NCBI GenBank assembly: GCA_964199315.1
Contig: OZ116701.1
Coordinates: 32,178,001-32,242,000, forward strand
Reading direction: 5' to 3'
Length of the DNA: 64,000 nt
Source of the DNA: Orbicella franksi
Lineage: Eukaryota
Position numbers and translations under genes: made by a program. Of this stretch, positions 10,001 to 36,994 are shown in pieces. Positions within the stretch are counted from its first letter, which is position 1, and every line of letters starts with the position of its first letter. Under the pieces are notes generated by a model, which was given only the letters and a program-made list of their open reading frames with translations, was not told the origin of the DNA and did no database searches.

Positions 10001-12347
10001 AGGAACATGAAATAATCAATTCCTGAGCTAGTTTTTTTTTCTGAGCTGTACAGTCCTCCGCAGGAGAAAAGATTGCGACTGGTAGATTTACCCATATTTC
10101 TTAGCGCACGAAAACTTTAACAAACGTACAGGAATGTTCTAAAATCTTCCGTAAACCCAGCACACACAATGTAGTTGGCACAAGGGACAAATATTGCAAA
10201 AATATGGCCTTCTTCAGTCTTCGAACTTTATGGGCTGTGTAATATTCGCATGCTCGAGCAATATCCACTGTTGAGGCTAAGAAAGAATTAGAAAAACGAT
10301 ATTCCTTCGACACACTCTAAAACATGTAAAAAGTTTTAAAAACTGTTGAAAAACCTGTAACATTGGCACTACAAAATATACTCCGCTAAAACACTAGCCT
10401 CATCAGTTGCACACCATATTGGATTTCGTAAATTTGTTACGATAAACAAAGTAGCAGATAATTCCTTTCACAGAATAGACGTTTGAAACCACTAACGGGC
10501 CAAATTCATTTGAGTTCAGCACGTCAGTGGCACGACGTTTGGACTAGGCCTTAAAAATTTATTGATAGCATTAAGTCTAGAAATCGCAGAAAACTTTAAT
10601 TGATTACTCAGATTCCAGCGACCCTATCCAGACCCTGTATATCTGGGGTCACTCACCATATTCGTGTCTCGAGCTGCACCCTGCGATGCCGTACTCACGG
10701 ACCGCCTGTTCAGCGGATTCTGCGCATGGTCCAGAATTCTCAGCGAACCCAAGGTAGTTGTACGAAGCAAGATTCACAGTCTTTGTAGTCGTTCCTGGAT
10801 AGCTGCAAAAATGTTTTATTAAAAAAGTACCGTCGGTATTGATCTTTTGTTTACCCAAAATAAGATAGAGAACAGAAGGGAGGCCAGTAATTTATAGGCA
10901 ATATTAAAGAAAAAGAAAGGGCGCTTTGGAAATAAACGAGTTCGTAACTGGGAAAAAGCAGTTTTATCCAGTTTGCAAGAGATTGGATAAAGGGCAACTG
11001 GTAATTAGCAAACTTGGCCATGGCGACTACGAGCAGGGTGCTATTTTCCTCCCATAGTGAAGGGCTGTGACAGCCTAATAAGTGAGTGCATGGTCATGGA
11101 CCCGGAAAAGGGATTTAGCCTTCCCCCCCCCCCCCCCCACCTCCGTCTCAACACCTCATGACACTTTGTTCGCAGCTATTCAAAGGATTTGGAGACTGGC
11201 ATTTCCTTGTCTTAAATTGGATCTAATATCTAACACGTAAGTCCTTTTAATCACCGAGGAAAGCCTCAAAACGAATAGTTTTCTAAGATAGAAAAAACTA
11301 AAGAAAAAATACAAAACCACAAATAAACAAGGATAATTTATAATTGAGGAAGATTGAGACAGCTAACGAACGGACAAGCTTGAAAAACAAATAGCCTTCC
11401 ACTGCCCCCAAGTCCTATCAAGTTTGAATCGGCCATGGCGAGGACGTTTCCTTATACTCGAACCCAAGCTCCGGGAGAAATTCGCAACGCATACCTGAAG
11501 GTCCAGTTCCAGTCATGTGATTGCCTGTCCACTAGATCGATCTCTCCACCAGGTACGCTACAGATGGGTCTGTTAAAACAGTCTCTTACACGAGTGTAAA
11601 GATTTCTCGTGTAGAAACTTTCAAAGTCAGAGTAGAGTGGTACGAAGCCCTGAAATGTCAAAATAAATCCCTCCGATTTGAGCAAAAAGTCTTGCTCCAG
11701 GTATTTCAAGCTATAAACAGGTTTGAAGGCCTGTTTACAAGGAGGGAGGGTTACACTAGCAAGCGAGTTAACCCTAGCTGAAGGGCAATAGGTAGCCCGG
11801 GTCTACAGACAAAATTTCACATGTAGGGTAACCCTAGAACCCAAGACAACTTAATGCGCGGTTACACTCAAATGGTTAATCCTACCTGGAGTGTTTACAA
11901 GGGAAAAAGTTAACCCGTTTGCCAGGGTAACCCTTGCACGCAGATAGGGCAACCCGCCTACTCGGGTAACCCTAGCTGTTTTGTAAACACGACAAAGAAA
12001 AAAAGGAGGAAATGTGTGAGTGCTTAGAGGTCCTTATCCGAGGAATTTGAGAACGCATCAAATATTTCCATCCCTGACACTACGCCGGAGAAATTTAAAA
12101 ACGCGACAATACGGTCATTTTGGATTTGTGTTTGAGGAAAATTCGGGCAGGGAATATTATGGTTATCGTAACGTCATCGTTTTCGAAAAGCATCGTTTTC
12201 AAAATGTTTTTCGTCCACACAAACGGAAAGCCGGCGTTTTCAATAGAAAATTGTTCTTGCAACTTTTGTCCCAACAAACTGCGTGATCACCTGCAGACCC
12301 GGGGGGGTACTTTGGAAATTTCTGGGTGGGGATGTGCCGCTGGGACC

Positions 12348-12378
<31 letters not shown>

Positions 12379-12566
12379 CAGCTGAATTTGCTACCCTATA
12401 CTAGATTAAACTCCCTAAATCCCCCCATCTATCGACACTGTTGAGGCTGATTTGCATAAATGTAAACTTGCCGATTTGATTTTTTTATATTTTTGAGTGG
12501 CAATTCCTGGTTCCTTAGCCTAGATAAAATCTTCAACCAACTAGTCAGTTTTGTGAAAAGTTATAC

Positions 12567-12605
<39 letters not shown>

Positions 12606-13876
12606 CCTAGAGTAAACTTCTTGGAAACCATACCCTTCACAGCGGCACATACCTATATAGCCCATATATGGCTGTGCCCCCCCCCCCCGCCCCCCGCCGG
12701 GGCTGCAGGCAGGAAAAATTGCCTCTAGCGACAAAAGAAGTTTTTGGCTCAATGTTGACCCATTTTGAGCACTATATATCAAAACAAGAAAGCTGAAGAA
12801 ATCATAATACCGTGTAAAAGGGTGGAAAAACGAGGAAATTTTGACGATCTGTTTAAAAATTAGTAGACATTAAAATTTCAAAAACAGTTGATCAAGTGAG
12901 TCCGAGTGTTCAGCTGAAGTTCTAAATTGAAATTTAAAATTAAAATTCTAAAATTCTAAAACGTATTCTGTATTAATTATGCACAAGGTTCGCCTAAACA
13001 CGTGCACGGCTAACAAAGATCAGCTGATTACGAAGATCACGCCACCAAAGAAAGCATTTACGCATGCGTTTAGTAGGAAAAGGTCCATAGTTCAGAAAGG
13101 TGGAATAATTTTTGCATAGAAATTTCGAAATTGCATGAATAGCTTGTGTCACAACAGAGATATAATCAATATTTTTACGACAGTTTAACTTTTCACGCAA
13201 AAAAACTAATTCGAGCTAATTCGGTGGACTCCTTTGAAAACAGCCATGAAGATCTTTTTGGCAAGACTGTCTTCGAAGCCCGCCAAAAAAATTCTTCACA
13301 TGATCAAGAAAAATTATCTTCGATCGCTTTGATAACGAAACATGCAAGCATGCTAGAATGCAATATTTTCCTCAAATGTAGAGGGAAAGTCAGCTTTAGC
13401 GGTAAGCTTATATAGTTTTCCGGCTCTTTGTTTTTTCTCTTTGTTTCCTGCACCGAAAACCGGTTGAGTTTAGAGTTTCAGCTTATTGTTTACGCAATCG
13501 AGGGTAGCGTCATTGTGTAGCCGTGTCAAGACGATTTCACTCACTGTTTTGGCTATGAAGATCCAACCACTTACACTCTGAATCTTAGTGCAACCTACCG
13601 TGGAAGTTATTTTCCTACCTTATTGCCTGTTTCTTTGACTGCCTTGGATTTTTCTAAGCCATATTTACGCATGAAGTCACGCATATAGCCGAAAATTATC
13701 AGAAAGAAGTAAGACATGTAGGTCATCACGGCGCAATAAAGAGGTGTCTCCTCAAACTCATCCAGCATTTCAGCAGCGTAGTTTTTCTCTTGGCTCGTGA
13801 ACCCGTTTGATCCCTTGTGGAAGCCATTTTTTCTGGAATGCTGACTTCTTCTCGTCGCGTACGAGCCAGCCACCAT
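4019..13876 (-). CDS. SPTLC2: Serine palmitoyltransferase LCB2 subunit, paralog A (divergent), 11 exons, 524 aa
   Basis: Exons 13619-13876, 11495-11649, 10657-10802, 9512-9730, 8959-9064, 8348-8567, 7550-7676, 6780-6816, 6136-6234, 5707-5836, 4019-4096. All introns are GT-AG and phases are consistent (1575 nt). Motifs: SYNYLGF, SDELNH, DEAHS, PLP-lysine GTFTKSFG, C-terminal [16 protein letters not shown]. Confidence 0.95.
7952..8027. repeat. 29-bp tandem minisatellite (~2.6 units)
   Basis: Unit cagtagagaacctgtttgccatatttgta at 7952, 7981 and partially at 8010. Confidence 0.9.
12297..12697. mobile_element. MITE starting cccggggggtact; related copy ~37939-38380
   Basis: cccggggggtact...tgtgccgctggga...ataccctat(c/t)c(t/c)agac motifs are shared with 37939-38380. 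Confidence 0.65.
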
Positions 13877-14869
13877 ATTTGCTTGGCGAAAAGAAATCTA
13901 CACGCTCGTGCGTGACGAATACAACCCGGCGAAAGGGGGGGGGGGGGGGGGGAGGAGGGGGGAACTCTGCAATACAAATGAGGGGCTGATTGTCCGACAT
14001 TTGGAAAAGAAACCCTAAATGGTCTAGAATCGCGATTTGTGACTGTGACTAAATTCATTTTCACCCCTGAGAGATGCCAATTTCAAACAGCAAATTAACT
14101 GTGACTGACAATCTCTTTTTGCTCAATATCCCTCCTAAAAGTGCTGCGGCGGCCATTTCATATTTTACTCAGTTTCATTTCTGTAAGTAGTTCCACCCCC
14201 CCTCCCCCGGGTGGGGAGGGAAAGCATGCCCGGCCCTCAGTCAACAATCTAAACACGACAAGTGTCAAGAACTTCATTCACTACTCTCCATTCAGCATCG
14301 AGTTCATTGTCAGCATGTTTTGTTTTGTAAGTCAGCACCTGTTGTAGACTTGTCATGTTTAAGCTGTGTCGTAATCAAGTCAGTTTCGTGGAGCAACGTC
14401 AGAATATTTTAGATATAGCGTGGTGAATGTTTAAAAGAACAGCAAATTTACTAGTAAATACACTTAAACTCTGTCTGGTGTTGTCTGCTGTTCAGTATTA
14501 TTCAGGCAAATGTTTCGTTCGATTTTAGGCGCAAATTTTAGCCCTCAAAGCTTGTGTAATGCGTCAAGCAAATCGGATTTATTTCTTGAAACTAAACAAC
14601 GATTATGTTTTTCTTAGGAGGTCTCCTATTATATTGCGCAACAGTACGAGCTGGAGGAGTTGCGTGACTCTGTTCAATGCGTACCTTGTCAAGCACGCGA
14701 CCGATCTGCGGGTCACGCGAAGTAAGCACGGACGAAGTTAACCCTGTTATAGTTACAGACCGATGTCATTGCTACAAACAGGCACAAAAGCAGTTGTTGA
14801 GACACTGTTCGAAAACAAACTTTCAGCCTTCAAGTGTAATTTGTCCTACCTACACTGTCATATTTCGCT

Positions 14870-16706: not shown

Positions 16707-19700
16707 TTATTTTTTGTGTTTCTGTTTCGAGTACTTGAGTTGCAGAATGTCGCCCACTTCATCGATAGCCTCCAAAGCCTGAAAAGTAATTAAATAAAAG
16801 TTACTTTTCGTGACGACATCTCACTGTTTCATCTTTGAACGATTTATGACCAATTAATGGTAAAAATCAGACACATTACAAAATTCGCCCCTATTGAACT
16901 AGGGCCACAAGAGAACGTCAAGCTCGCCTGGTTCGAGATGCTTCGTTCATGTTTTGCGCCACTCAGCATGTTATCTCTAACGTTTTCACAACCACGACAA
17001 GAAAAATCGTATGGTTTTCTCAAAATTCGAACATCAAACAGGTTTGGGCCACCTAAAACTGCTCTGCTAGTGACTTTACAGAGTTCTGAAATTCTTTTAG
17101 CACTGCTTCACTGCTAGGTTATTTTCCACTGACCTTGTCCAACATTTCCCGCGTGTGAGCAGCTGACAAGCAGAACCTGGTGCGAGATTCGATCAGAGGA
17201 GTGGCAGGGAACCCAACCACAACAACAGCGACGTTCCTCTTTAACATTTCACGGCCAAACGCTCTAAAGAAAGAGAACAACGGCTTTTGAATTTATAATT
17301 AAAAAAACGTACAAAGAAGTTAGCCGACCTATCTACCATCTCAAAATGAAGAGAGTAGAACCAAAGCCTAACAGGGAGTAAAGTTTAGGGCACAGGTAAC
17401 CCTTGCAGTCTGTCTGACAATAAGCTTAATGCGGGCTGTAGCACCGGTTACCTGAAACCTCATAGGATTTTCAAATGTAGGTTTTGCTCGCAGAAAATAA
17501 TTTCAAGACAAAATTAATTTTGCCATCCACCCATCCACATCATCTTTAAAACAAATGTTTCTGCATTACCAACATCAGCCATCTGTGCTGAAACTTTGCA
17601 ATGACGCTTAAGTTTTCACGCTCTCAATTCTAAACAGACTACTTGCGGTTTCTCAAGAAAAGGTCAGTACAAAACTTATGAGGTTATAGAGAGGGCATGC
17701 GAAACTTGTTCTTGAAGCCTAAAAAACAATGTTAATTTAGGGAGGAGGCCACATCAGCCTTAGCTGATTTTCATGCCGGTCCTGTCCAGGTCGAAGTGGA
17801 ATTTGGAGACGTTGGTTTTTGTAAAGGGAGGAAAACCGGAGAACCCGGAGAAAAACCCTCGGAGCAAGGAGAGAACCAACAACAAAGTCAACCCACATAT
17901 GGCACCGGGCCAGAATCAAACCCAGGCCACATTGGTTGGAAGCGAGCGCTCTCACCACTTCACTATCCCTGCTCCCCATGCTGATTCAAATAAAGGCGTA
18001 CTCACGCAATTTTTGCTGGCATAAAGAGAAGAAGAGGTACAACAGGCGAGGCATCATGACCATAAACAATAAATCCCATTTCTTTGAGCCTTTGCCGGAA
18101 ATACCTAAAGAACAAAAAAAAAAGGGAAAACTTGTACAGATGTAACCTTTTACATGTACCAGCTAGGTAGATCAAGGTAAATTACCAAGTAATGTATACA
18201 CATTACACACAGATTTTTCAGATTTTTCCTTACTTGCAGTTTTCAGCAAGGGCAATCAGTCTTTTCTTCCCTGGAAGAGTTAAAATTAAAATTGTCAATC
18301 ACTTCCTTGTAATGCAAAAACTGGAGGGAAATTGCTCTTAACTTTTGTTTTTGCTGGTAGTATCAGGGGGAGGACAGGGGGTGGCAGATGGACTGTCACT
18401 GGAGAGAAGATGTACATGTATGAACCCGATACAATCAATGCTTTTGGCACAATCAATCTTGAACAACACCATTAACTGTTAACTAACCAACCTTTGTCTG
18501 TGCCGTCTTCACCCATGATCATCTTCATGGATGAGATGATTTGCATCACCACTGGAGGCGACATGGAAGAAGCGTAGGCTGCACTGTGAGAACTTCCTCG
18601 GATGTGACTAATTATTTCCTGTGGAATAAAACAAGTTCATCAGAAAACCCGCATTCACATTGAACTCAATTTAATAATCAACAAATTGACCAAGAAACAA
18701 ATTCCAATCAAGTAACCGATGTACATTGAGCTCACTTCTGTTTACAATTGTTTGTTTGTTTGTTTGTTTGTTTTGGTGGAGGGGGTGATTGAATAACTCT
18801 AAGATATAAATGCCACAAAATAATGTGTTAAATATTACAGCCCAGCTATGTGATGTTGAAATGTACATGTACATGTTCATGTATTAAATGAGTACAAAAA
18901 TTGTGTTCCATGATATTTGTAATGTACATGTAAGAATCAAATTAATTATAAGTTTAATGCTATGCACACAGACTTCATTTCCCTACCCATGACAAGTACT
19001 AAGCACTGAGTTCAATCTCTACCTTTCAGAGTCATAACAAATCAACTAATAACCATTTTGGTCTGTAGGGCCACCTTACAATCTTTACCTCTGCCATTGT
19101 TTTGTACTAATATTCATCACTCTCCAGACCACAGTGGATCATACATGTACATGTGCATGTTTGTACAGGAAATGTCATTATTATCAAGCTGACCTTAGTT
19201 GCAGCAATGTATCCCCCTGCTGCTCCAAAGCTCTTGGTAAATGTGCCCATCATGATGTCGATATCAGCTGGGTCCACACCAAAGTAGTCTGTAACGCCCC
19301 TTCCATTGGGACCCATGGCACCAATACTGTGGGCCTCATCAAGAAAAATGTATGCTTTGTACTTCTTTTTAAGGGCGACAACCTCTGGCAGCCTCACTAT
19401 CGAGCCTTCCATACTAGAAATTAAACATGACAGTTTAAAGTATTTTTTATGTCGATGATTGGGTTGAAAAACTGTTTACAGGATATGTCCAGTGCTGTAT
19501 AATTTATTGAAATTCTGTTTATACTACATTTAAAACAGTTAATTAAAATTAAAACTAGAAAAAAAAAACTTGCATACTACTACATTGTAACCCTCCGAGG
19601 AAGCCATGGGCTAAAACAAATCTCAGGTTTATCACTTCAGACTTTAAATTTAATTGTAGAAGGGCAGGCTTTGAGTGTTTGTAATAGAGAATACTTATTA

Positions 19701-22700
19701 TCAGTGAGCGTGCACTAAAGAATGTACATTGTAGAATTTTTTTTGCCTATAAATAATTTTTTCTTCAAAAATCAAGACACTAAATTTGATGTAAATATAT
19801 GCATGCATATATTAACAACTATTGCCATAGTGACCTATCAATCTTACTGTAAATCACTGTGTCTCATACTATACATGTAGTAGCACTTCTAAGTTAACTG
19901 CAGAGCAAATCTACAGTACATGGCTTTTTCCGCTTACCTGTAGATACCCTCAACAATGATGAGTATTTTTCTCCATGGTCTGTGGGTGCGTGGTTGTCCC
20001 TGGACAACTGACTCACGGAGAATACTTTCCAGACTCTTCATATCTGAGGCAGAGAGTGAATGTTAACAGTATTTAAATCAGCAAATTATTAAAAATATGT
20101 TCACTAGTAAGCAGGGGTTTCGTTAGCATTTTCAGCAGGAAGACAACTGGTTTTCACAGGTGGGCACAACGTTTTGAACTGAACTCCTTTTTTCGAAAAA
20201 CTTTCTTCTAGATGTTCAAACCAGGTGGGAAAATTGACCCCAGAGCCAGTCAATTTGACTGGTGCCCGGCCCTTATTGAAACTCCTGAGTATATGTAAAG
20301 TATCAATAATAACAACCTTATATAACTCTTCAAGGCCTTGTTGTGGTATCCCCCACCCAGCATTTTGTCAGTTCACCCAATACACATTTCTGTTTCTGGG
20401 TGCCGATGAAGAGACTAGCAATGAACCATTAATGAGTTCACTTTGTGACAAGCGTGGGACAGGAGTGGAGTGTACAAAAAATGCTCACTACTTTGATGTT
20501 TTAACCAAAAGCAATGTAAAGTGGTGTTTGTCACTGTACAACGTACGACTACAGCTACTGTAGTTCTTACCATTGTGTTTGAAGACTTTAATTTTGGCTC
20601 CAGACAATCTTGCCCCGAGCACAAGTGAGGAATGGTTCAGCTCATCACTGACTATCAAATCTCCCTTACCCACCAGGGTGGGTATGTTGGTGGAGTTGGT
20701 AGCAAAACCCATCCCAAACGCCATTGCGGCGGGCTTGCCAAGAAAACGTGCCACGAGAGTCTCCAGTTCATCATGAAGGTGAAGAGTACCTGATGAAGAC
20801 AATCTCTCAATTACTTCAAATCAATGTTTCAAAGGCAATTATGTTGGGAATCACACAATCATATTGCAAACTTTGGACCACTATTTACAGCTTGGCCATT
20901 ACAGTTCAACACACATGTATACATGTTTGATTAACTTTTAACTGCACATTTACTGATCTCACCATACTCATGTCGTGAGCTGCATCCTCCCAGACCAAAT
21001 TTATGGACTGCCTGTTCTGCAGCCTGTGCACATGGTCCAACATTTTCCGCAAACCCAAGGTAATTATAAGAACCCAGATTGAGTGCCTTTGTGGTGTCTC
21101 CAGTTTGCCTAAAATTGAGGGAAAAATTATAAGACGCTCAGTTAATTTTTCTAATTTTCCATAAATGTCTGTAAATTTGGCAGGCTAGACACAGTTGGCA
21201 TGAAAAAAAAATCATACACAAACGTGTGGAACATTAGAAAAATTAACTGAGCGTCTTATAGCCAAGCTACATCCTTCAAACTTGGTGAATACAATCTCCT
21301 ACCTAGTATTTTAACATAACGGTTGCGATTCACAAATTGTGTAAAATTCAATTTTGGAAAAAGTTATTTGCCATCAGATTCCCATACAAACACTAATTTC
21401 TGAATGTTTTGCCTTCCTGTCGAGGGCATCGAAAACCATGATAAAGTCTATTGAACCAATTGAGTAAACTAGCTTATTTGTAAAGGGTGCCTCAACTAGA
21501 CAAGCCACCATGTGAGTGGATGTGAAATAGCTATGTCATACCTGAAGGACCACCCATAGTCATCAGATACTCTATTGAGAACCTCAATATCGGCACCAGG
21601 AACACTGCAGATTGGTCTGTTCCAACAGTCCCTTATACGAGTGTAAAGGTTTCTTGTGTAGAAACTTTCAAAATCAGCATAGAGAGGGACAAACCCCTAA
21701 AACAAAAACAAAAAATACCATTTGAGGCAAATTAGTGTTACATGTACTCAGGGACTTATTTTGATTTAAAAGTACAATGTAAATTTTCAACCACAAAATA
21801 AAAAAAAGTAGGCTCTAAAAATGGGAAAATATGAAAACATCACAGATTGAACTGCATTGTACATGTACCTGAGTCGCCATTTCCTCTTTTCACTTTTAGG
21901 TTTTCTCATTTATAATTTCATTATACTAAAATTCAGAATGGATGTAAGGCAATTTCAAGCAGAAACTACCATACTAGTAGGACCCATCTGCAATAGGGTA
22001 CATGTAGGCTGACAAAATGTGTTTGGTTCTACCAAAAATCATGACAAATCTTCTCTCCAACCAATTTTCACTTCAGTTAAAGTGTACACGGTTAAAAATC
22101 AACAAACTGTTGGCTCCTGAACCACCAAATGCCAGTCACATGTGAATTAAAAACTTTCTGGCTATGGCAAAACAAATGAATTGATGTTTTCCTTAAAATG
22201 CCCATCTCAACGCTTCACATGAGAAGCTTTACCCTTTAAAAAAATTCTGTCCAGAGAGTCTTTTAATCTTGGTAAGTAATTCTTCAAATGCCTTAGGCCC
22301 AGTTCAGACGTCGCTTTTCCGCCGTGCCAAACTAAATTGCAATTTGGTTCGACTGCAGTACAGCAGAAAAACAACTTTGACTCGGACATCGTGCCAGAGT
22401 CGCACCAAATTCAGGATATACTGAAGCCTCGTAACAACTCTCCTCCTAACTCCCCATGGGAACGCAATCTCCCCAAAATACAATAATATAACAAATTTAT
22501 GAATTTTGTTTAGCCAACAGAAGCATGACGTTTGAATTGCTGCCATGCCAAAGTTGTGTAGCACAGCAGAGCTTGCCAAACTTGATTGCTTGGCGAACTT
22601 AATTCAAAAGTTTGATTCGGGCGCCGTGCTTCTGGCGTGCTTTTGTCGAACTTAATTCCTGAATTAAGTTTGGCACAACAGAAGCACAATGTCTGAACTG

Positions 22701-23749
22701 GGCCCTAGAAATGAAAAAGCTGCAGTAAGTGAAGTTTAGATCAAAATGCATACAACAATTTTTTACGTTATTTTAGGAGACAAACTTGAAAGGGTTAACC
22801 TCGTTTGTCTCCTTTTCCACCTTTCTTTTATTTTCATTTCATTCCATTTGAATTTGAATTTGAATTGTTCATAAACATTTATGTATCAAATCCTTTGGCT
22901 AAATTTTCAAATACCCGGGCTACCTTCTTTTATCTTATTGCATAACAAATAGTTTTTGTTTCAAATTGCATCGTTCTAAAAGAGACCTGGTTAGCTCTTT
23001 GGTAGTCGCTCGATTTTCTACAATTGCTCACATACTTTGTCCAAAGATAAAGCGTTTCAACTATTCACTGAGAAATACGAATCTTAGACGATAAACCACA
23101 TTTTTAGTCGATGACAACATCAACGTGTTCGCCCATGCGTACACGCATCAAAACATCGCGAAGCTATGAACATGCCGTATCGAAGCACGCTTCAGAGCTA
23201 TTTTTGACAAAAAGAACGCTAAATCCTTAATCTTTAGTAAATAAATTTTCTTAATGCTGTAAATAAACTTCGTGGAAAGTGAAATCGGTGAACTTCTACG
23301 CAGTTACACCACGCTATTGATTTGAAATCGGCTTGGTCAACGCCTACAAACTCATGTTTTACTCGAGCTCGAGACAGCTGACTTCGAGAAATCTGCCTGA
23401 TCCTGACATTATCGACGACTTCCAAGACCTCAAACCGGTAATAAAACTAAACAAACTATTTTCTAACAAAACTAACCTTGTTTCCATACTCTTTGGGAGC
23501 TTTCGACCGTTCCAAGCCATATTTTCGCATGAAGTCACGCAAGTAACCGAACAGAATCAAGAAGAAGTATGATAAGTAGGTTAAAACAGCCACTTGGAAC
23601 GGTGTATCTTCAAACTCCTCGACAAAAGATTCTTTAAACTCTTTAAGCTTCTCTTGCTCGTGAGATGAAAAGCCATTTGCTTTGGCAGAATAGCCATTTT
23701 TGTATGGTTTTCGCCTCCGTGGACTCGTAGTATACGCTCCCGCGACCAT
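16707..23749 (-). CDS. SPTLC2: Serine palmitoyltransferase LCB2 subunit, paralog B (canonical), 11 exons, 527 aa
   Basis: Exons 23477-23749, 21542-21696, 20963-21108, 20571-20789, 19938-20043, 19194-19413, 18492-18618, 18234-18270, 18006-18104, 17134-17263, 16707-16778 (1584 nt). Internal exon sizes equal those of paralog A. Motifs: [52 protein letters not shown]. Confidence 0.95.
17728..17977 (-). mobile_element. tRNA-derived SINE with V-domain-like core (intron 9 of SPT paralog B)
   Basis: Reverse complement of the 59590 element, with core ...ctccgagggtttttctccgggttctccggttttcctccc. It explains spurious ORFs at 17737-18024. Confidence 0.75.
18748..18774. repeat. (TTTG)n microsatellite
   Basis: ttgtttgtttgtttgtttgtttgtttt read directly. 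Confidence 0.9.
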
Positions 23750-24009
23750 CTTGAGTTGTTTAATTTCCCTCTAGTTCCCAGTCCCTTATTGCTCAACTGA
23801 TCACCTGGAAGGGGCGTGGCATTACAGTTGCTGCCGGCTGTATTCCGGGGTTCCGGCCGGACGATGATAAATTTCGAGCACGCATGATTTTATTTTATCA
23901 TTGGTAATATCAAATTACTGAAAGATCTGGTCTCTCCTTGTTAACCAACGGGCTCCCCATCTCCCTCACAGCGAGACTTTGCCATCCTTTGCTCTCCCAG
24001 CTGATGATG

Positions 24010-24593: not shown

Positions 24594-25222
24594 GGCTGTC
24601 AAAAATCAGTGGAGGTGGAGGGGTGGGAGTGGACTAATTCATCTGAGGCAACGAAAGCAAATGCTCGACTGATATCAAATAAAAACAAAACGACTAAGCC
24701 CTCTGTGAACCCTTATTTTTTAATTTATGTATGAACATATACATTTTTTTGAATTCTACGAAAAGAGCGTTTTAGCCATGATACGAAAAGCGATAACATA
24801 TAAATCAGATAAAATACACAGTTGATCAAAATGCTTGTTAACTGGTTATTAACGATAAGTTCATGAGTGTGAGTATTTAAATTCCCGCTAAGTCAACAAG
24901 CATGCTTGATTTGATTTACGTGAGCTACAGAAAAAGGAGCAAACGAGATTTGATATGGTCGTTCAAAGCTCCTCTTGCAAGCAGCCTGCCGTAAATGCAT
25001 GAACGCATTGCGTACCTATAATTTCATTCGTATCGATTGGTATTATCACTTCCTTTAATTTGCTGCTATAATTACAATATTCTTTTTAGAATCCTCCCTT
25101 TTTAGATTCCAGACCAGTCTATGCTAATTCTTCTGACTAAGATAATATACGATTGTAGCTGCCGGATACTCTAGAAGAGGGCCTCTATGATAGTTCGATG
25201 TTTGTGAGTATCTTTATTCATA

Positions 25223-28200
25223 TTATCCCTCGAGAACTTCTTTAAGACCAGCTTTCATCGTGTCTGCGACAATCCCGTAAACGACAGTCCACGCTTCCTT
25301 AACTTCTGGTGTAAACTTCTCTCCAAGGCCCATGTCAAGCGTGCCCAGTAACGCGGCTCCAACAGGCTGAAAAATAATCAGTAAAAGAAAAATTGAAAAA
25401 TCAATGGGATGCAAAATCAACGAGTGTGTCATGATTTACACGCGAGGAACAGCGTGTTCACTGTTGAGTGGTCAATGGTATGCTGTTCTCGCTTGTTACG
25501 ATAAACGATGAGATAACTTTGGTCAGCGTTAACGTTGTTCAGGTAAAACCGCCCTTAGCGCTACCATAATTTATATTATAAGTGCCATAAGATTATGGGC
25601 ATCAGGTAGCAACTACGAAAAAGCGAAATGGAACACCCTTAGCCGTATCAAGCATGCTTTATATACCCCTTACTAGGTGCTACGAGTCACAGACAATAGA
25701 GACTTGAGCAAACCAGGCCCGGGTTGTTCGAAAGGTTGATAACGCAATCCACCAGATAAATCACTATCCAGCAGATAGCATCGTTTGTTTTGTCAACATG
25801 TATCCACTGGATAGTAATTAATCCGCTGGATAGTGTTATCCAGCCTTCGAACAACTGGGGCCAGGACAGCAACGGCAACGACTGACGTCATCAAAGAAAA
25901 GGTTTAATGAGCAGAACAATTAGTGTGCACGTGCGTTATAAATCTTTGTACATTTCTTTGCCGTCCTCTTCACAACAACAACTTGAAATGCCTACGTTCT
26001 GCGTGTTTTAGAGAACGCGAACGACGACGGCTAATTTTCGTATTTTCATTTGGAATATACCGCTGGCATTACATATCTTGAGCAAGTTCTAAGACCAAAA
26101 GGCGCACTGAACAGATCTAGACAATAGCGAAATTCGAAGGTAAAATATAAATTCTTCTTACTAAGCGTTGTTCTCTCTAATGCTTAACTCTTCCTCACTT
26201 TTAATAAACAGTTTGCAACTCACTCCCGGAACGAGCGAACTACATTGCACCTGGTGCTGAAATAATTTACATTAATTTCGTACCCCAAAGTGATGTTCCT
26301 CAACTTTGTACATGGAATGCCTGGCTCCTAAGTCCTTGAGGGCAGGAACAATAGAGCTCAGATCATTGACAGACGCCACAGCCAAGTTGACATGTTGCAT
26401 GGTTACCAGTCCCTGCCTCTTAAATCGATCGTCGGTTCGCATGGCGTCCTCGGTCGAATTAGCCAAATCTCTAAATGAAAACATCTGTAAAAGTTCCGGA
26501 TTCTCTTTAAATAGCCTGAAAGCAAAGGCGTTGAAATTACAGTCAAACCTGGCCTTGACGCGTTAAGGTGTTTCGTAAATTACCAACTGATGTAGCAGTA
26601 TGAAGACATGATTGATCATCGCAGTTATGTAACCTTTGCAAATGATTTTTACTATGCCAAGTGCCTCAGTAGTCTCTCCAAACAATATTACCAGGCCATC
26701 ACGCCTGTTTCAGATGATTTACCAGCAGTTACGACTCAAACTCAGTAGTAGCGAGGTGAAACAGGTGTGCTTCTAATCCAGAATTGTGGAAAAAAATCTT
26801 CGATGACCAATCATGTCTTTATATCTTTCTCCACAGTTCAAATATGTGATCTGTCATATATTCACTTGATCCATCAGTGCTGGGGACTGGACTGTTGGAC
26901 AGACAACAGAAACGTAGTTAAAGTGCGTGTTAGCTTAAATGATTTGAAGGAAAATTTGAGAAACGTTCCAGAAAAGTCCCAAAACTTCACCGCTCAGATG
27001 GAAAACGTGTAATGTAAAATTCCCTTAGCTTTACTTCAAATTACAATTTTAGTTCGAAGAACAATGTTCTACGACTAATTTTCGCCTCCGGCCTGGAAGC
27101 AACTGTTGGCAAAACTTGAAAATAAAAGGCTTTCATAATATTTACGATTAGCTTTGTCGAGTTTTGTGTTTTACAATCTTGCAGGCAAGATGGAACTACG
27201 GGAAAAAATGAAAAACAGAAAATGAAAAAACCAAAATCAGAGCGTTATCAGTGCCTTAGCCAGAACAAAGTTATGATTCAGGCAATGTCCATGGTTAAAT
27301 TCTCTTCCTAGGTATTTCGCAGGGTTTTACTCTCCCCTAAAACAAACACACACTGGCTACGGCTCCGGTTATCATAGAGCTTTGTGCGCGCACGTTCATT
27401 GGAAAAAACAGTTTGTTTTGAAATAATTTAGTCCTTAGCAACAGACTTTTGTTGGTCCCGCCCGGCATGCGATAAGGGGGAGGAGAAAAGAATTCCACGG
27501 GGAGAAAAAGGATTAATGATATGTATAGCAGAGCTGTATTTTTCATTATTTTTGTCTATTTGTATTTTGATCGTCTCGACATACACTTGAAGCCAACATT
27601 CGCTCTATTCCAGATATTTTTACAACCCTCAGTTTATTAGCACGCGCCTGTTTCACCTCGCCATTAATGAGTTTCAGTCGTAACTACGGGTAAATCATCT
27701 GAAACATGCGTGACGGGCTTAGAGAGATAACTGACGCATTTGACATGGTAAAAATCATTGGCAAAAGTTATGCGGTTCTGACCATAGTTCGTTATTACCA
27801 AACAGGACGTGATCGTAGGAATATTTAGTCAAAAGCAAATCTCAATGCAATGCGTACGGCGAATCTTGAAGATAGAACAACAGTCTCAGAGCCTGCGAAA
27901 AGAAAAGCAACTAATGCGATGCCTGCTCAGTTCAGTAAAGCAACGTATAATTTCTGAACGTTGCTCTTGTTTTAGAGGTCGAGTAACATATGATATGATG
28001 ACTGGCATTTCTGTATATCAAAGTATATGATTTCAAATAGTTAGCCCTGACCTCATTATCTAAACAGATGCGAGAAGTTTCGTTACGAACAACTCGCGGC
28101 CATGTCAAAACAAGAGATGAGTCAATTTTGCAGAACTTTCGGGGCTTACCTTATATAGAACTCGACTCCAACTTGTTCCAGATCTCCATTCACAAGTTTC

Positions 28201-28478
28201 CAAGTATTCTGCACCAAAGAAATCTGTTCTTGAGTTATGGGTCCCTCGACATCTTCGCCTTGTTCCTCCGTCGCTTGCTTATCATCTTCTGTTCCTTGGC
28301 GACCATATCCATCTGCTGGTGCTGTTTCTTCAACTGTTTCTTCAGTTATCTTGCCCTCTGGTTGTTGCCTGTGCTGTTTAGCAGCACTTGTCTCCTTCAG
28401 ACCTGGCGACTGCGTCTGTTCAGCAACAGGCGCCGGTGCGGTCCTGGTCTTGATAGCCTTACTTCCACCACATCCCAT
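25223..28478 (-). CDS. Globin X-like (neuroglobin/cytoglobin-type fold) globin with N-terminal acylation motif, 3 coding exons, 234 aa
   Basis: Exons 28150-28478, 26284-26515, 25223-25366, with introns at the classical globin positions B12.2 and G7.0. N-terminus MGCGGS. Landmarks: A-helix W (QNTW), CD1 Phe (QMF), proximal F8 His (LGARH), H-helix AW..VY. Confidence 0.95.
25713..25865. mobile_element. Short palindromic MITE in globin intron
   Basis: ccaggcccgggttgttcgaaagg...ccttcgaacaactggggccagg TIRs. Confidence 0.8.
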
Positions 28479-28900
28479 CTTGACTCTAAAATTGTAAACA
28501 CGATTCTCTAAAGTCACGGTGCTATTGTGTCCTTATCATCAACTTGGGCATCTGTTTAATGAACATTTTTCAGGTGAACTTGGCCCTCAACGTTAATAAT
28601 TAGCAAACCAAACGACTGAACAGCTAGTCGAGACGTGTTTATTCACGAGATAAATTTAGTAACATGATATTTATATACGTAGCCACAGCATGCAACTGAG
28701 CATCAGATCTTTGCCGCGCGAGGCGCGAACCTCGCGCGCGAAATTTGGGTTGTAGACTAAGCTGCGCGTCTAACAGACAGGAATCTTCTCCTCGCGCACT
28801 CTTAATCCAGGCTATTAATTTTCTAAAAGCATGTTTTGAATAAACAGTTATTAATTTTAACCACCATGAGGCCACTGAGTTAACAAAAAGCCAAAGAGGA

Positions 28901-31900
28901 TAATTTGCTTCTTAGAAATTGTAGCACGATAGCTTACACAATCTTGGACGAAAAAGCTATTTTTACGATAACTGCAGAAATTCTCGCGCGCTCATTGGCT
29001 AATTTTCATTGTCAATATGCGGACAGACACATGGATTCATAATTTATGCGATGCGTCAACGAGCGAGAGCGGACAATTTGACAATTTGTTATCGTAAAAA
29101 ACAAATTGACGTCAGATTTTCAAGCGTCTGTCCTGTTATTGACAATGAATTTCGTCATAACATTGTCAAAGTAGTCTGAGGATCCACTCGGCTATCGCCT
29201 CGTTGATTCACAGCTACTTTGACAATGCTATGATGAAATTAATGATCAATAACAGGACAGACGCATGAAAAACTGGCGTCAATTTGTTAAATAGACCCTT
29301 GCGGATTCATGCCGAAGTTCACCTACAACGGAGCTTTATTTTTCGTTCTCTTCGTGTCTATTAACAAGTTTTGTTTGAAATCTTTAGTTTCGAATAGCAG
29401 CCTCTGTACTCAAAATTAAGGTAGAGATAGCGAAAAATATATCGTATTTAGTATTTTTGTTTTATAACTCGAAATAAATTTCACGCGATAAACAACATTT
29501 GAAGCAGCCAACTAAGTGATTGGGAAAATTAACGCAAAACATTTGACCCACAGGCGAAATATTTTTGGTATACACGAGTACCTAGCCTTCTAAATAAACC
29601 GGTATATTATTTGCAAGCTGATGTGTCTTTTGTTTGAAAAATACGGTGTTCCTGTATATTGACGTTGAAAGACGAAGGGTGATATTAGAAAACTCTCTTC
29701 TGAAACCTAGTGTGCTCATCACTCATGTTTAACATTAGTTTAACATTAGTTTTCGCACTTAACCACCCGAGGTCACGGGCTCAGTATGTTTGTAGACTCT
29801 TCATAGTCCCTTTTTCTGGCTCTTATAGTCAAGCGAAGTTTGTTATACTTATGCGATATTGAAGAGAGGAGAAATTTTCATCTCTAACGAAAACGTACGT
29901 CGCATCCTTGACAACAAATGATGTTGACAAGCACGTCATTAATTATAAAACAGCGAACGTATGTCTAAAATTTATCTTAAAATGCATAAGATTTTTGGAA
30001 AGATATTAAATGAATTTTACTTTCCTATAAAATATCTTGGAATAGTACAAATGTGTATGTACCATGTTGTGTTGGGGTGTATTGCAAATCCGTTAATACG
30101 GTTGGTTCTGATCTACCCAGTACTTTGGTAAGTTGATCATTCGCCGAAAAGCTTTCCGATTAAGACTTGCGCGTATGTGTTTTATAAAAAAAAAAAATCA
30201 GATATCCCTCGTCATTTAGTGTTTTAAAAAGTACGAGATACATTTTTGTGCGAGAAAATTGTTGGTCAGTTAAGAAGCAACTCATTGTTGTTTTCTACGA
30301 GCATTGGTCTACACGGCTTCTCCTCGCGACCTTTCTGTCTCCTCATGCATCGAAAATGCAAACATGCGTTCTCCCGTTAACTGCTTATTAATTGAATTTC
30401 TCTTTACAAATGAAGATATCCATGATCGAAAAACTACTAAGATTGTTCTAAACAACATTGATCCTATCATTGGCTGTAAATATTTGGTTTTCTTATTGAT
30501 ATGTGCAATTGCTTATCGGCTTTCCGTGTGTCAAGTTATTTTATAAGTAACGTATAGAATTTTGAGAAACGAAGGAGAACTTAGTGGTCTCAGGAGAGAA
30601 TTATTCTCTACCATTCGTTAAATGTTGGTCCACCGAATCTTAGCTGTAAGCGTTGTAAATTCTTATTTCAAATATCACTTACTCGCTCTCCATTGAAATC
30701 ACCTTAGCTTGGTTACAGGTTATCGAAGGTTACTGCTTTCCCGTGAGATCTGTATCTGATCTGCAGCTCTCTGTCTTCGAAGAGGTCGTTATTTTCAGGA
30801 TACAAAAAATTGTGGGACACTACAGCGCAGGTCACACTGTTTAGATTTCTACTGAGAACAATTCGCTTCTTAGACATTGTAAGGTAATAGCTTATACAAT
30901 CTCGGACGGAAAAGCTGTAAGTTTATGCCCTTGCGGTTTTCCAACAGAAGTTCGCCTCACAAAGGAGCTCAATTTTGCTTTCTCTCCCTTTCCCTTAACA
31001 AGTTTTGTTTTAAATTAAATCTTAAGTTTAGAATAGCGGCCTCTGTACCCAAAATTGAGATATAGATAGAGAAAAATATATATCGTATTTTTGTTTGTTT
31101 ATGTTTTTTCTTTGTGTTTGTTTTGTTTTTGAAACTCGAAATAAACTACCCGGGATTGACAACATTTGAGTGAAACAGACGGCTAGATTTGAGAAAATGA
31201 ATGCAAAAAAGTTTGACTCACAGGCGAAAATTTGGTGTTTACACTGATTACCTATTAAACTATGTATATTCTTTTGCGAGAAATTTATCCTTTGTTTGAA
31301 AAATAGACGGTGTTCCTGTATATTGACATTGAAAGATGATGAGTGATATGAAAACTCTCTTCTGCAAGCTGAAAGGCGGAGAAACTATAATGAGCCCACA
31401 TGAGTCTAGTTTAACATTAGATTTAACACTTAGGCCCCCGAGGCTATGAGCTCAGTATTTCTGTAGACTCTTCAAAGTCCCTTTTACTGGTTCTTGTAGT
31501 AAAGCAAAGTTTGTTATACATGTGTGACATTAACGATCGAAAGGAAAAATTTTCATCCCTAAGCAACCCGTAAGACCAATCTTTGCTTCAAGGATGGTCG
31601 CATCCTTGACAACAAATGATGCTGACAAGCACGTCATTAAAACAGCGAACGAGTGTCTAATATTTATCTAAAACTGCATAGGATTTTTGGAAATATATTA
31701 AATGAATTTTACTTTCTTATAAAACATCTTACCATGGTGTGTTGGGGTGTATTGCAAATCCGTTAACTGACGATTGGTTCTGATCTACCCGGTACTTTGA
31801 TAAGTTGATCATTCGCTCAAAAGATTCCGATCAAGACTTGCGTGTATGTGGTTTTTTAAAAAACAATATATCCCTCTTCACTTAAATCTAAAAATGACAA

Positions 31901-32520
31901 GAGGTATATTTTTGTGCGTGAAAATTGAAAAAATAGTTTCCTCTTAAAAAGCAACTCACGGTCGTTTTTTACGGCTACACCTCGCGAACGTTCTTCCCCG
32001 TCGTCGAAAGTGCAGACATGCATTCTCCTGTTTTCTGCTTATTAATTGAATTTGCCTTTACAAATGAAGATATCCATGGTCGAAAAACTACTAAGAGTGT
32101 TCTAAGCAACACTGATCCTATAATGGCTGTAAATATTTGGTTTTCTTGTGGATAATGTATTTACAATTGCTTGCACCGTGTGTCAAGTTATTTCATAAGT
32201 AACGTATAGAATTAAGAGAAACGAAGGGGAACTTAGTGGTCTTAGGAGGGAATTATTATCTACCACTCGTTTGATGTTGGTCCACCGAATCACGAGAAAC
32301 TGTTGCTACTTTTCTGTTATCACTTGTTGTAAATTCTTATTACAAATTTCACTTACTCGCTCTCCATTGAAATCACCTTATCTTCGTTACAGGTTATCGA
32401 AGGTTAGCTTTCCGTTGAGATCTGTGTCTGATGTGTAGCTTTCCGCTGTCTTAGAAGAGGTCGTTATTTTCGGGATAGAAAAAAATGTGGGGCACTACAG
32501 CGCAGGTCACACTGCTTAGA
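28901..32520. repeat. Tandem duplication of a ~1.6-kb unit (copies ~28901-30857 and ~30858-32520) upstream of the globin
   Basis: The two units are colinear and clearly homologous (e.g. cacttactcgctctccattgaaatcacctta and cactacagcgcaggtcacactg occur in both). Unit 1 carries an extra insertion at 28957-29294. Confidence 0.9.
28957..29294. mobile_element. Non-autonomous element inserted in unit 1 of the tandem duplication; second copy 48078-48413
   Basis: Absent from unit 2 at the equivalent site; colinear match to 48078-48413 (ctattttacgataact...gcgctcattggc.aattttcattgtcaat...gtcaatttg.taa.tag). Confidence 0.85.
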
Positions 32521-35523: not shown

Positions 35524-36994
35524 CGAAATTAAGAATTTGTCTGATTTTTACAGGCAGGCACTCTTAAGCACCTTGATTTTGTCTTGCTCTCGACCAATAG
35601 GCGCCCGAGAATTCCCACAGTACAGTTATAACTAATGGGCTCCTCGTGAAAATAAACAGATGGTGTTAAAGAGGAAAGTACAGGTAAGCAGGTAAAATAG
35701 AAATGTCAAATGCCGGTTTCTTTAATTTGACCCAAGGAACCTTTCAAAAATTCCAAAAATTCGTCAAATTAAATAAATTGTTCTCAGCTCTTTTTTCGCG
35801 CTAAGCTGCGCTCTCCGTCACTTTTTGCATATTTCTAGGCTTGGTAGAAATCTTTAATTATTACCGTTTGCTTGCTGTGATTACTTTTTTGGAAATTCGG
35901 CCTTATTTGCTCTTGGTCTTCTCAAATAGCAGCGTGGGCATGCATGTAAATGATGCGCCTAATGCCTAAAGCAATATTGATCGGCTTATTAATTTAAAGG
36001 CGTTTCTAATTATGTTTCCATGGTAGCCGAGGCGAACTGACAGGAAAATTCACTTTTTGCCTATCAACAGTCCGCTAGATCACTCACTAACATTCCTTGA
36101 TTGTGAATTCTGACACGTCTGGGACAATTTATGGTGAGGTGCAGCAATGAAAAATAATTGGTAAATGCGAGCCTCTGTAGCCGAGGAACGTTTCTTGTTC
36201 AACAGGATCACTAAGAGACTTTTGATTCTAAGAAGTTGTAGAGTTCGAACAAACAGTTTAAAACGAAACAAAACAGTCAAGAAAATTTCATCTGTTTTGT
36301 GCTGAAATCATTCTGGGTCCGGCATAGTGACCTAAAACTGCAAGGTTTAAGGTTGTGACGCCGGCCGTTGCAGAACGAATGCAATATTATCATGGCTCTG
36401 TGCATTATCTTACGAACACGCTGTTCCTGATTTCTTGTATTCATTTAAAAAGGAACTTTTAATTTCAGTTACTGACATTGGATAGCCTGTTTCTACTAAG
36501 GCCTAAAGGATTTCTCAAAACTGGGGTAAAAATGTTTACGTTTTGAACTTACCTTGTAGTTTGAAGTGGTCTTATCTATAGTCAGCCTGACGTGAAGTTA
36601 ATTAAAACTGCTGATCATTCATGATGAACCATGTAGTTAGCGTCTATGGAAAAAACACCCGCAGATAATTATCGACAAGTAGAGACAAAATATTACATTC
36701 GAGATCAAATATCTTGCTACAGCGCCAAAATAGCTCAATTTGTAAAACTGCTGTCAACATGCCCGGCAACAATGCTCAAATTTTGTCAGTGAGTACATAA
36801 CATTTTTTTTGACCCACACAAATATTTTAATTAAGTCTTACATAAACATTATCAAAGTTTTGAGAAGGAAAATTTGACAGCTTTCGAATCAAATCACGTC
36901 AGCGTGTTAAAGACAACAAAAAATTTATGATAGTATTACTCACCAGTTTTCACTCTTGTCCGGTTATGGACGATGTCAGAACCGAAGCGGAATT

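Follow-up and report, generated by a model that had tools for sequence, protein, structure and literature searches.

In this study, we analysed a globin gene on the minus strand of a 64,000-nucleotide stretch of the Orbicella franksi genome (assembly GCA_964199315.1, contig OZ116701.1, positions 32,178,001 to 32,242,000 of the forward strand; hereafter the window, in whose numbering all positions are given). Judged by its sequence, the gene is best explained as an orthologue, in a stony coral, of an anthozoan globin with an N-terminal acylation motif and with Gln instead of His at helix position E7. The distal haem pocket of the encoded protein combines Tyr at B10, Gln at E7 and Thr at E11. 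This triad is a clade-wide trait of stony corals and not a one-off, and it occurs in an anthozoan lineage whose Gln E7, N-terminal Met-Gly-Cys (MGC) motif and B12.2 and G7.0 introns have already been described (PMC6077788). Taken as a whole, the reading of the gene as a conserved anthozoan acylated Gln-E7 globin with a membrane-proximal, oxygen (O2)-dependent redox role is given a probability of roughly 0.72.

As a conserved member of an already noticed cnidarian globin lineage, the gene leaves the understanding of globins unchanged. The new detail is small, and consists of Tyr B10, Thr E11 and His E14 together with a difference between corals and sea anemones at E11. E11 holds the one residue known to bring a Tyr/Gln pocket down from an ultra-high O2 affinity to a moderate one, and natural variants are present on one acylated scaffold, namely, Thr E11 in corals, Phe B10 with Ile E11 in one orthologue and Val E11 in anemones. 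The E11 variants make the mechanism of the nerve mini-haemoglobin of Cerebratulus lacteus testable in a full-length globin, and coral physiology gains a defined candidate for membrane-proximal chemistry of O2, nitric oxide (NO) or reactive species.

Haem pocket and its conservation

An earlier note on this DNA, made from the sequence alone, had placed the Tyr, Gln and Thr codons at positions that proved exact in the spliced gene model. Its assignment of these residues to B10, E7 and E11 was upheld by profile alignment to sequences of the PDB and by the helix starts in an AlphaFold model of an orthologue with 89% identity. The residues of the pocket are as follows:

28155..28157, minus strand: Tyr108, position B10 (gene model and profile alignment)
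26479..26481, minus strand: Phe122, position CD1 (orthologue table)
26413..26415, minus strand: Gln144, position E7 (gene model and profile alignment)
26401..26403, minus strand: Thr148, position E11 (gene model and profile alignment)
26392..26394, minus strand: His151, position E14 (in all coral orthologues; Met in sea anemones)
26317..26319, minus strand: His176, position F8, the proximal haem ligand (gene model, profile alignment and orthologue table)

A profile built from nine orthologous domains was compared with all sequences in the PDB. The best match was Hell's Gate globin I (3S1I, E 1.4e-30), with Tyr29, Gln50 and Leu54 opposite Tyr, Gln and Thr of the coral domains. Next came human neuroglobin (1OJ6, E 6.9e-23), which has Phe28 (B10), His64 (E7) and Val68 (E11) at the same places. 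Alignment of exon 2 to the acoel neuroglobin 4B4Y likewise set the coral Gln opposite the E7 His. The Pfam Globin family (PF00042) was detected in exon 2 alone at 8.4e-9 and in the full-length orthologues at 1e-17 to 3e-20. AlphaFold was run on the domain of the closest full-length orthologue (P0138, residues 72-228; same pocket) and not on the window protein, and gave a model with a predicted local distance difference test score (pLDDT) of 89.8 and a predicted template modelling score (pTM) of 0.85. The modelled E helix starts where Gln becomes E7 and Thr becomes E11, and the modelled B helix starts one residue past the position that puts Tyr tenth. Foldseek comparison of this model returned neuroglobins with template modelling (TM) scores of 0.84-0.91 and Hell's Gate globin I with a TM score of 0.92 (target-normalised). 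As modelled, the protein is a full-length globin with the eight helices of a 3-on-3 sandwich, an A helix (model helix 6-19) among them, and a domain of 156 residues.

Homologues were gathered by an exhaustive HMMER search with exon 2, two word-indexed searches and cluster look-ups; among hexacorals, the orthologues sampled came from stony corals and two sea anemones. Full-length orthologues were found in Oculina patagonica, Desmophyllum pertusum, Stylophora pistillata, Porites lobata, Montipora foliosa, several Acropora species and transcript assemblies, in addition to many exon-2 fragments and an Orbicella fragment. With the window gene counted, nine stony-coral orthologues are full-length; eight of them have the triad together with MGC(G/A/R)(G/N)SK, Phe CD1, His E14 and His F8, and the ninth differs in having Phe B10 and Ile E11. 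No orthologue departs from His176 and Phe122, and the coral exon-2 fragments all read Gln, Thr and His at the corresponding places (E14 is not readable in one truncated fragment). Conservation of the triad in the seven other full-length coral orthologues far exceeds chance. The set covers both robust and complex corals, including the azooxanthellate cold- and deep-water Desmophyllum pertusum. The earlier note had itself named the triad's being the norm in this globin clade as a result that would refute its reading; among these corals, the triad is the norm, and the note's interpretation overstates the novelty.

The sea-anemone orthologues, from Exaiptasia (A0A2K9UYR0) and Actinostola, also start with MGCGGSK and have Tyr B10 and Gln E7. 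Corals and anemones differ in the E helix: corals have Thr at E11, Val or Ala at E10 and His at E14, whereas anemones have Val, Arg and Met, respectively. Tyr/Gln/Leu (bacterial, 177 domains) and Phe/His/Val (eukaryotic) predominate among approximately 390 related globin domains, two of which are non-cnidarian domains with Tyr/Gln/Thr. In this collection, Thr E11 is essentially limited to the coral lineage, two metagenomic orthologues and two microbial-looking proteins.

The coral and anemone proteins formed one group in a quick tree of 59 sequences, with a support of 90 in the Shimodaira-Hasegawa-like approximate likelihood ratio test (SH-aLRT). This group stood beside animal-type Phe/His/Val globins (SH-aLRT 93) and outside the bacterial Tyr/Gln/Leu clade. 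Smith et al. (2018) described one cnidarian globin lineage, restricted to Anthozoa, labelled nvec7000121 and probably of single origin, in which E7 is occupied by Gln and not by His (PMC6077788). In their analysis, this lineage lies apart from the globin X and neuroglobin clades; they predicted pentacoordination for it and suggested the detoxification of ligands, for example NO or carbon monoxide, as a possible role (PMC6077788). The same study found the MGC motif to be common among sea-anemone globins and the B12.2 and G7.0 introns to be present in all nine Exaiptasia (E. pallida) globin genes, and mentioned neither Tyr B10 nor position E11 (PMC6077788). The family is labelled 'neuroglobin-like' in NCBI/RefSeq, and nothing specific to this gene was found in the literature on the expression of coral genes with this label.

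Several related globins were observed in the same searches. P0095 and P0103, two proteins from Joint Genome Institute (JGI) metagenomes, are microbial-looking Tyr/Gln/Thr globins, one of which has a C-terminal rubredoxin fusion; their presence indicates that the triad arose more than once outside animals. Exons 2 and 3 of Gln-E7/Thr-E11 globins lie on two metagenome contigs (L001:635-874 and 2297-2434; L003:170-397 and 772-900), which share the G7.0 intron and have an exon 2 that is 47-51% identical to the window protein, with exon 1 outside the contigs. A coral paralogue lineage (P0150, which is Desmophyllum pertusum OS493_012757, with P0058, P0077 and P0080) has Lys E7, Thr E11 and His E14. 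In Desmophyllum, this Lys-E7 paralogue and the Gln-E7 gene share one contig of 3.25 Mb, and the window contains no copy of the paralogue. Five further proteins (P0001, P0002, P0003, P0005 and P0007), probably from protists, contain 5-14 tandem globin domains each, reach 2,461 residues and share an LQLFSFKDE-type CD region with the coral globin. A search of the ESM Atlas returned generic eukaryotic globin clusters only.

Gene structure, transcripts and N-terminus

Three coding pieces (28478-28150, 26515-26284 and 25366-25223, minus strand), with consensus splice sites on either side, join into an open reading frame of 705 nucleotides that encodes a protein of 234 residues starting with MGCGGSK. 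The features of the gene are as follows:

36553..36584, minus strand: 3' end of the non-coding first exon (5' untranslated region), from 23 reads of RNA run X23 and contigs of runs X7 and X1
28150..28485, minus strand: first coding exon, with a 7-nucleotide leader, the ATG at 28478, the acylation motif, the acidic linker and helices A to B12
28458..28478, minus strand: MGCGGSK acylation motif, with a predicted Gly2 myristoylation signal including Ser6 and a predicted palmitoylation site at Cys3
28245..28457, minus strand: linker of approximately 71 residues that joins the anchor to the globin domain, with a composition rich in Glu, Ala, Thr and Gln
26516..28149, minus strand: intron B12.2, GT..AG, with 35 spliced reads in run X23
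26284..26515, minus strand: second coding exon, helices B13 to G6 (sequence and RNA)
25367..26283, minus strand: intron G7.0, GT..AG, between the G6 and G7 codons, with 27 spliced reads in run X23
25223..25366, minus strand: third coding exon, helices G7 to H, with the stop codon TAA at 25225-25223 (sequence and RNA)

The first coding exon terminates in phase 2, after the second base of the Arg B12 codon, and the 3' untranslated region runs on below 25000. The donor and acceptor pairs of the two coding introns are AAG/GTAAGC..TTTCAG/G and GGG/GTACGA..TTTCAG/C, where the slash marks the exon boundary. B12.2 and G7.0 are the classical, ancestral intron positions of animal globins. Four public coral RNA runs were placed on window positions 25000-30999. 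The exon joints between 25366 and 26284 and between 26515 and 28150 were crossed by the 27 and 35 reads of run X23 listed above, and assembled contigs of runs X7 and X1 contain both junctions. Exons 2 and 3 are each spanned by single RNA pieces, and the RNA shows two coding introns only. Read depth across the exons in run X23 is modest, at about 10-27. The gene is real and expressed.

The 23 reads of run X23 and the contigs of the two other runs diverge from the genomic sequence at 28487 into a single uniform sequence of 30 nucleotides, which matches window positions 36555-36584 exactly and is followed by a strong donor (AAG/GTAAGT, at 36553/36552). The first exon of the gene is hence non-coding and lies upstream of the coding exon at a distance of some 8 kb. 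In the spliced 5' exon, a TGA and a TAG precede the ATG in the same frame, the TAG lying 11 codons before it, and these in-frame stops show that translation of the main transcript truly starts at MGCGGSK. The N-terminal MGC acylation signal reported in the earlier note is present, and the RNA confirms the ATG of MGC as the first in frame. MGCGGSK fits the N-myristoylation consensus G-{EDRKHPFYW}-x(2)-[STAGCN]-{P}, and MGC myristoylation/palmitoylation motifs are known from globin X and Src-family proteins. The heptapeptide is identical in most coral orthologues and in both sea-anemone orthologues. Among corals, linker identity is 19-80%, whereas globin domain identity is 65-89%; the far stronger conservation of the domain is consistent with selection acting on it.

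Two near-identical mini-exons, at 32357-32367 and 30683-30693 (minus strand), end in ATGGAGAGCGA followed by the donor GTAAGT. Joined to 28485, a mini-exon of this kind would place MESEVK before MGC, thereby abolishing the predicted myristoylation signal. No reads using the mini-exon at 30693 were found in the four RNA runs. N-terminally extended isoforms are recorded in relatives, as MENEIK-MGC in P0251 and as the Acropora RefSeq isoforms X1 and X2. P0251, which also has 234 residues, was rejected as the window protein; it is the MENEIK-MGC isoform of a close relative.

The RNA reads carry five variants in exon 2 (N153D, V159L, N160S, S163G and A168T; window 26343-26388), partly beside the window allele, and none of them is at the haem pocket. 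All but A168T correspond to the residues of an Orbicella faveolata RefSeq fragment (P0006) that is 95.6% identical to the window protein. These variants point to allelic or sister-species variation, and the agreement with P0006 ties the window to Orbicella or a closely related coral. A tblastn search of the spliced protein against the window detected no second globin copy. Metatranscriptome contig depth rises to about 46,000, with many loose ends, at 28800-29400, 25800-26200 and 26600-26800, that is, in the upstream intron and the two coding introns, and an opposite-strand joint is located at 26631. These stretches look like dispersed repeats or transposon fragments and not globin transcript.

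Two tandem copies of SPTLC2 (serine palmitoyltransferase 2) lie directly downstream of the globin gene, at 4040-13930 and 16710-23758 on the minus strand. In Stylophora pistillata, the gene model PFX27161.1 (P0266) is a globin fused with SPTLC2, and this fusion together with the order in the window indicates that the neighbourhood is conserved among robust corals.

Proposed function and alternative explanations

We propose that Gly2 is myristoylated and Cys3 palmitoylated, so that the globin domain would be held against the inner side of a membrane, with the acidic linker of about 70 residues as a flexible tether. The ferrous haem is probably five-coordinate or weakly six-coordinate, because the protein sequence has no His or Lys at E7 or E10. 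Tyr B10 and Gln E7 would form hydrogen bonds with bound O2. A further hydrogen bond, between Thr E11 and the hydroxyl of Tyr, is probable and would make the O2 off-rate differ from that of the anemone proteins, in which E11 is Val. The role that we consider most likely for the protein is membrane-proximal, O2-dependent redox chemistry in the form of NO dioxygenation or reactive-species protection, and these activities have been proposed for Tyr/Gln bacterial globins and for membrane-bound globin X. Membrane-proximal NO or reactive-species chemistry appears preferable to bulk O2 storage, and confidence in any specific activity is low. The function would be general to anthozoans and not tied to photosymbiosis.

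Several points weigh against this proposal. Among solved structures, the closest relative by sequence is Hell's Gate globin I, whose haem is hexacoordinate at neutral pH even with a Tyr/Gln pocket (PMC11203436). Through alternative first exons of the kind predicted in the window, part of the protein may not be acylated. A careful tree resolved neither the deep nodes nor the coral-anemone grouping, and an approximately unbiased (AU) test left a single clade unrejected (p-AU 0.35). The sole stony coral in the study of Smith et al. was Acropora digitifera, and no candidate there is labelled nvec7000121 (PMC6077788); an Acropora candidate labelled by its best hit in Micromonas may be this gene. 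The hydrogen bond between Tyr and Thr is assumed, and the model is haem-free and represents the 89%-identical orthologue.

The earlier note had favoured a moderate-affinity, fast-exchange O2 buffer or sensor of the Cerebratulus type, in which Thr E11 detunes the Tyr/Gln pair and which is suited to the swings in O2 between day and night in photosymbiotic tissue. We consider this unlikely. The three distal residues are indeed those of the mini-haemoglobin, in which Thr E11 speeds O2 release (PMC3430218), and Thr E11 is kept in corals, with Val in its place in anemones. However, fast exchange in the mini-haemoglobin also relies on an apolar tunnel tied to the loss of the A helix, whereas the coral protein has a full A helix, and the mini-haemoglobin is absent from the 60 best PDB profile matches and the 50 best fold matches. 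The same pocket in the azooxanthellate, deep-water Desmophyllum pertusum calls for caution against reading the triad as an adaptation to photosymbiosis and weakens the relevance to photosymbiosis that had been suggested. The depth of about 10-27 in run X23 does not suggest a bulk storage protein either, which is a weak argument. A wider scheme with a natural E11 switch in hexacorals may also be conceived, in which coral Thr (with His E14 and a non-basic E10) would give fast exchange and moderate affinity like those of the Cerebratulus mini-haemoglobin, though in a full-length globin tethered to a membrane, anemone Val would give ultra-high, Ascaris-like affinity, and alternative first exons would toggle the protein between membrane and cytosol; as a joint proposal, it is improbable.

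Doubtful, too, is an internal sixth haem ligand as in Hell's Gate globin I or cytoglobin, which would turn the protein into a lipid- or redox-responsive membrane switch. The coral protein would be lipid-tethered, and His E14, found in all corals, could be considered as the ligand, but we know of no precedent for ligation from E14. Hell's Gate globin I, the closest solved relative (E 1.4e-30), is hexacoordinate despite Tyr/Gln and is opened by lipid (PMC11203436). Nevertheless, the ligand position in other Tyr/Gln hexacoordinate globins is E10 (PMC11203436), which is Val or Ala in corals and is aligned with Lys in Hell's Gate globin I, and the models of the anemone orthologues in the study of Smith et al. 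are pentacoordinate (PMC6077788). Pentacoordination, as suggested in the earlier note and proposed for the Gln-E7 lineage (PMC6077788), is likely but not assured, given the behaviour of Hell's Gate globin I (PMC11203436). Horizontal acquisition of a bacterial flavohaemoglobin-type single-domain globin, with Tyr/Gln as bacterial heritage, would account for a coral domain that is 44-47% identical to marine bacterial single-domain Tyr/Gln/Leu globins, compared with 38% to a jellyfish MGC globin, and for a top PDB sequence match that is bacterial. Against this, the introns coincide exactly with B12.2 and G7.0, the ancestral sites in animals, the MGC acyl motif is common to other cnidarian globins, the SPTLC2 synteny is shared with Stylophora, and in the quick tree the protein is grouped with animal-type globins and is not nested in the bacterial clade. 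Animal introns, acyl motif, conserved neighbourhood and tree position together make horizontal transfer very unlikely, and it was rejected on these grounds. The conserved, acylated Gln-E7 globin of anthozoans, with a role in membrane-proximal redox chemistry, is the explanation that we retain.

Comparison with known globins

Bacterial single-domain globins of the flavohaemoglobin type, such as Vitreoscilla haemoglobin, differ from the coral protein in having Leu E11, no introns and no acyl anchor. Neuroglobin shares the fold and a similar CD-D region and provides the best structural matches, with TM scores of 0.84-0.91 at 30-32% identity; its distal residues are Phe B10, His E7 and Val E11, its haem is hexacoordinate and it carries no acylation. 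Vertebrate globin X shares the N-terminal MGC signal and the B12.2 and G7.0 introns, but has His E7 and is bis-His hexacoordinate, whereas the coral protein has Gln E7. Vertebrate globin X also has extra introns at E10.2 and H10.0, and neither is present in the coral gene, in which RNA shows exons 2 and 3 to be uninterrupted. With Gln at E7 and the E10.2 and H10.0 introns absent, membership in globin X was rejected. The 'globin X-like scaffold' of the earlier note was abandoned for the same reasons, the Gln-E7 lineage moreover lying outside the globin X clade (PMC6077788).

Hell's Gate globin I (3S1I) is 35% identical to the coral protein, and its Tyr B10 and Gln E7 fall exactly on the corresponding coral residues; it differs in having Lys E10 and in being without about 14 CD-D residues that the coral protein has. 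Hexacoordinate at neutral pH in spite of Tyr B10 and Gln E7, it becomes pentacoordinate on lipid binding (PMC11203436).

The nerve mini-haemoglobin of Cerebratulus lacteus shares the Tyr B10/Gln E7/Thr E11 triad only. It is a soluble protein of 109 residues with a ligand tunnel and no A helix, whereas the coral protein combines a 156-residue domain, A helix included, with a linker and an acyl anchor. The roles that the earlier note had assigned to the three residues in the Cerebratulus protein agree with the literature (PMC3430218, PMC2867796). Thr E11 in the Tyr/Gln pocket of the mini-haemoglobin accelerates O2 dissociation to 200-600 per second, and fast exchange is tied also to the apolar tunnel, which is linked to A-helix loss (PMC3430218); the role of Thr E11 in a Tyr/Gln pocket is also treated in PMC2867796. 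The likeness drawn to this protein therefore stands for the three residues but not beyond them, since the coral protein is a full-length globin with an A helix and no closer kinship was detected. Kinship was rejected, as neither the PDB profile matches nor the Foldseek matches support it.

The lineage of Smith et al. (nvec7000121; Exaiptasia diaphana A0A2K9UYR0, which is P0120) shares MGCGGSK, Tyr B10, Gln E7, Phe CD1, His F8 and the B12.2 and G7.0 introns with the coral gene. The globin domain of the Exaiptasia protein is 55% identical to that of the coral, and the coral linker is about 50 residues longer. The anemone members of the lineage have Val E11, Arg E10 and Met E14, whereas the corals have Thr, Val or Ala, and His at these three positions.

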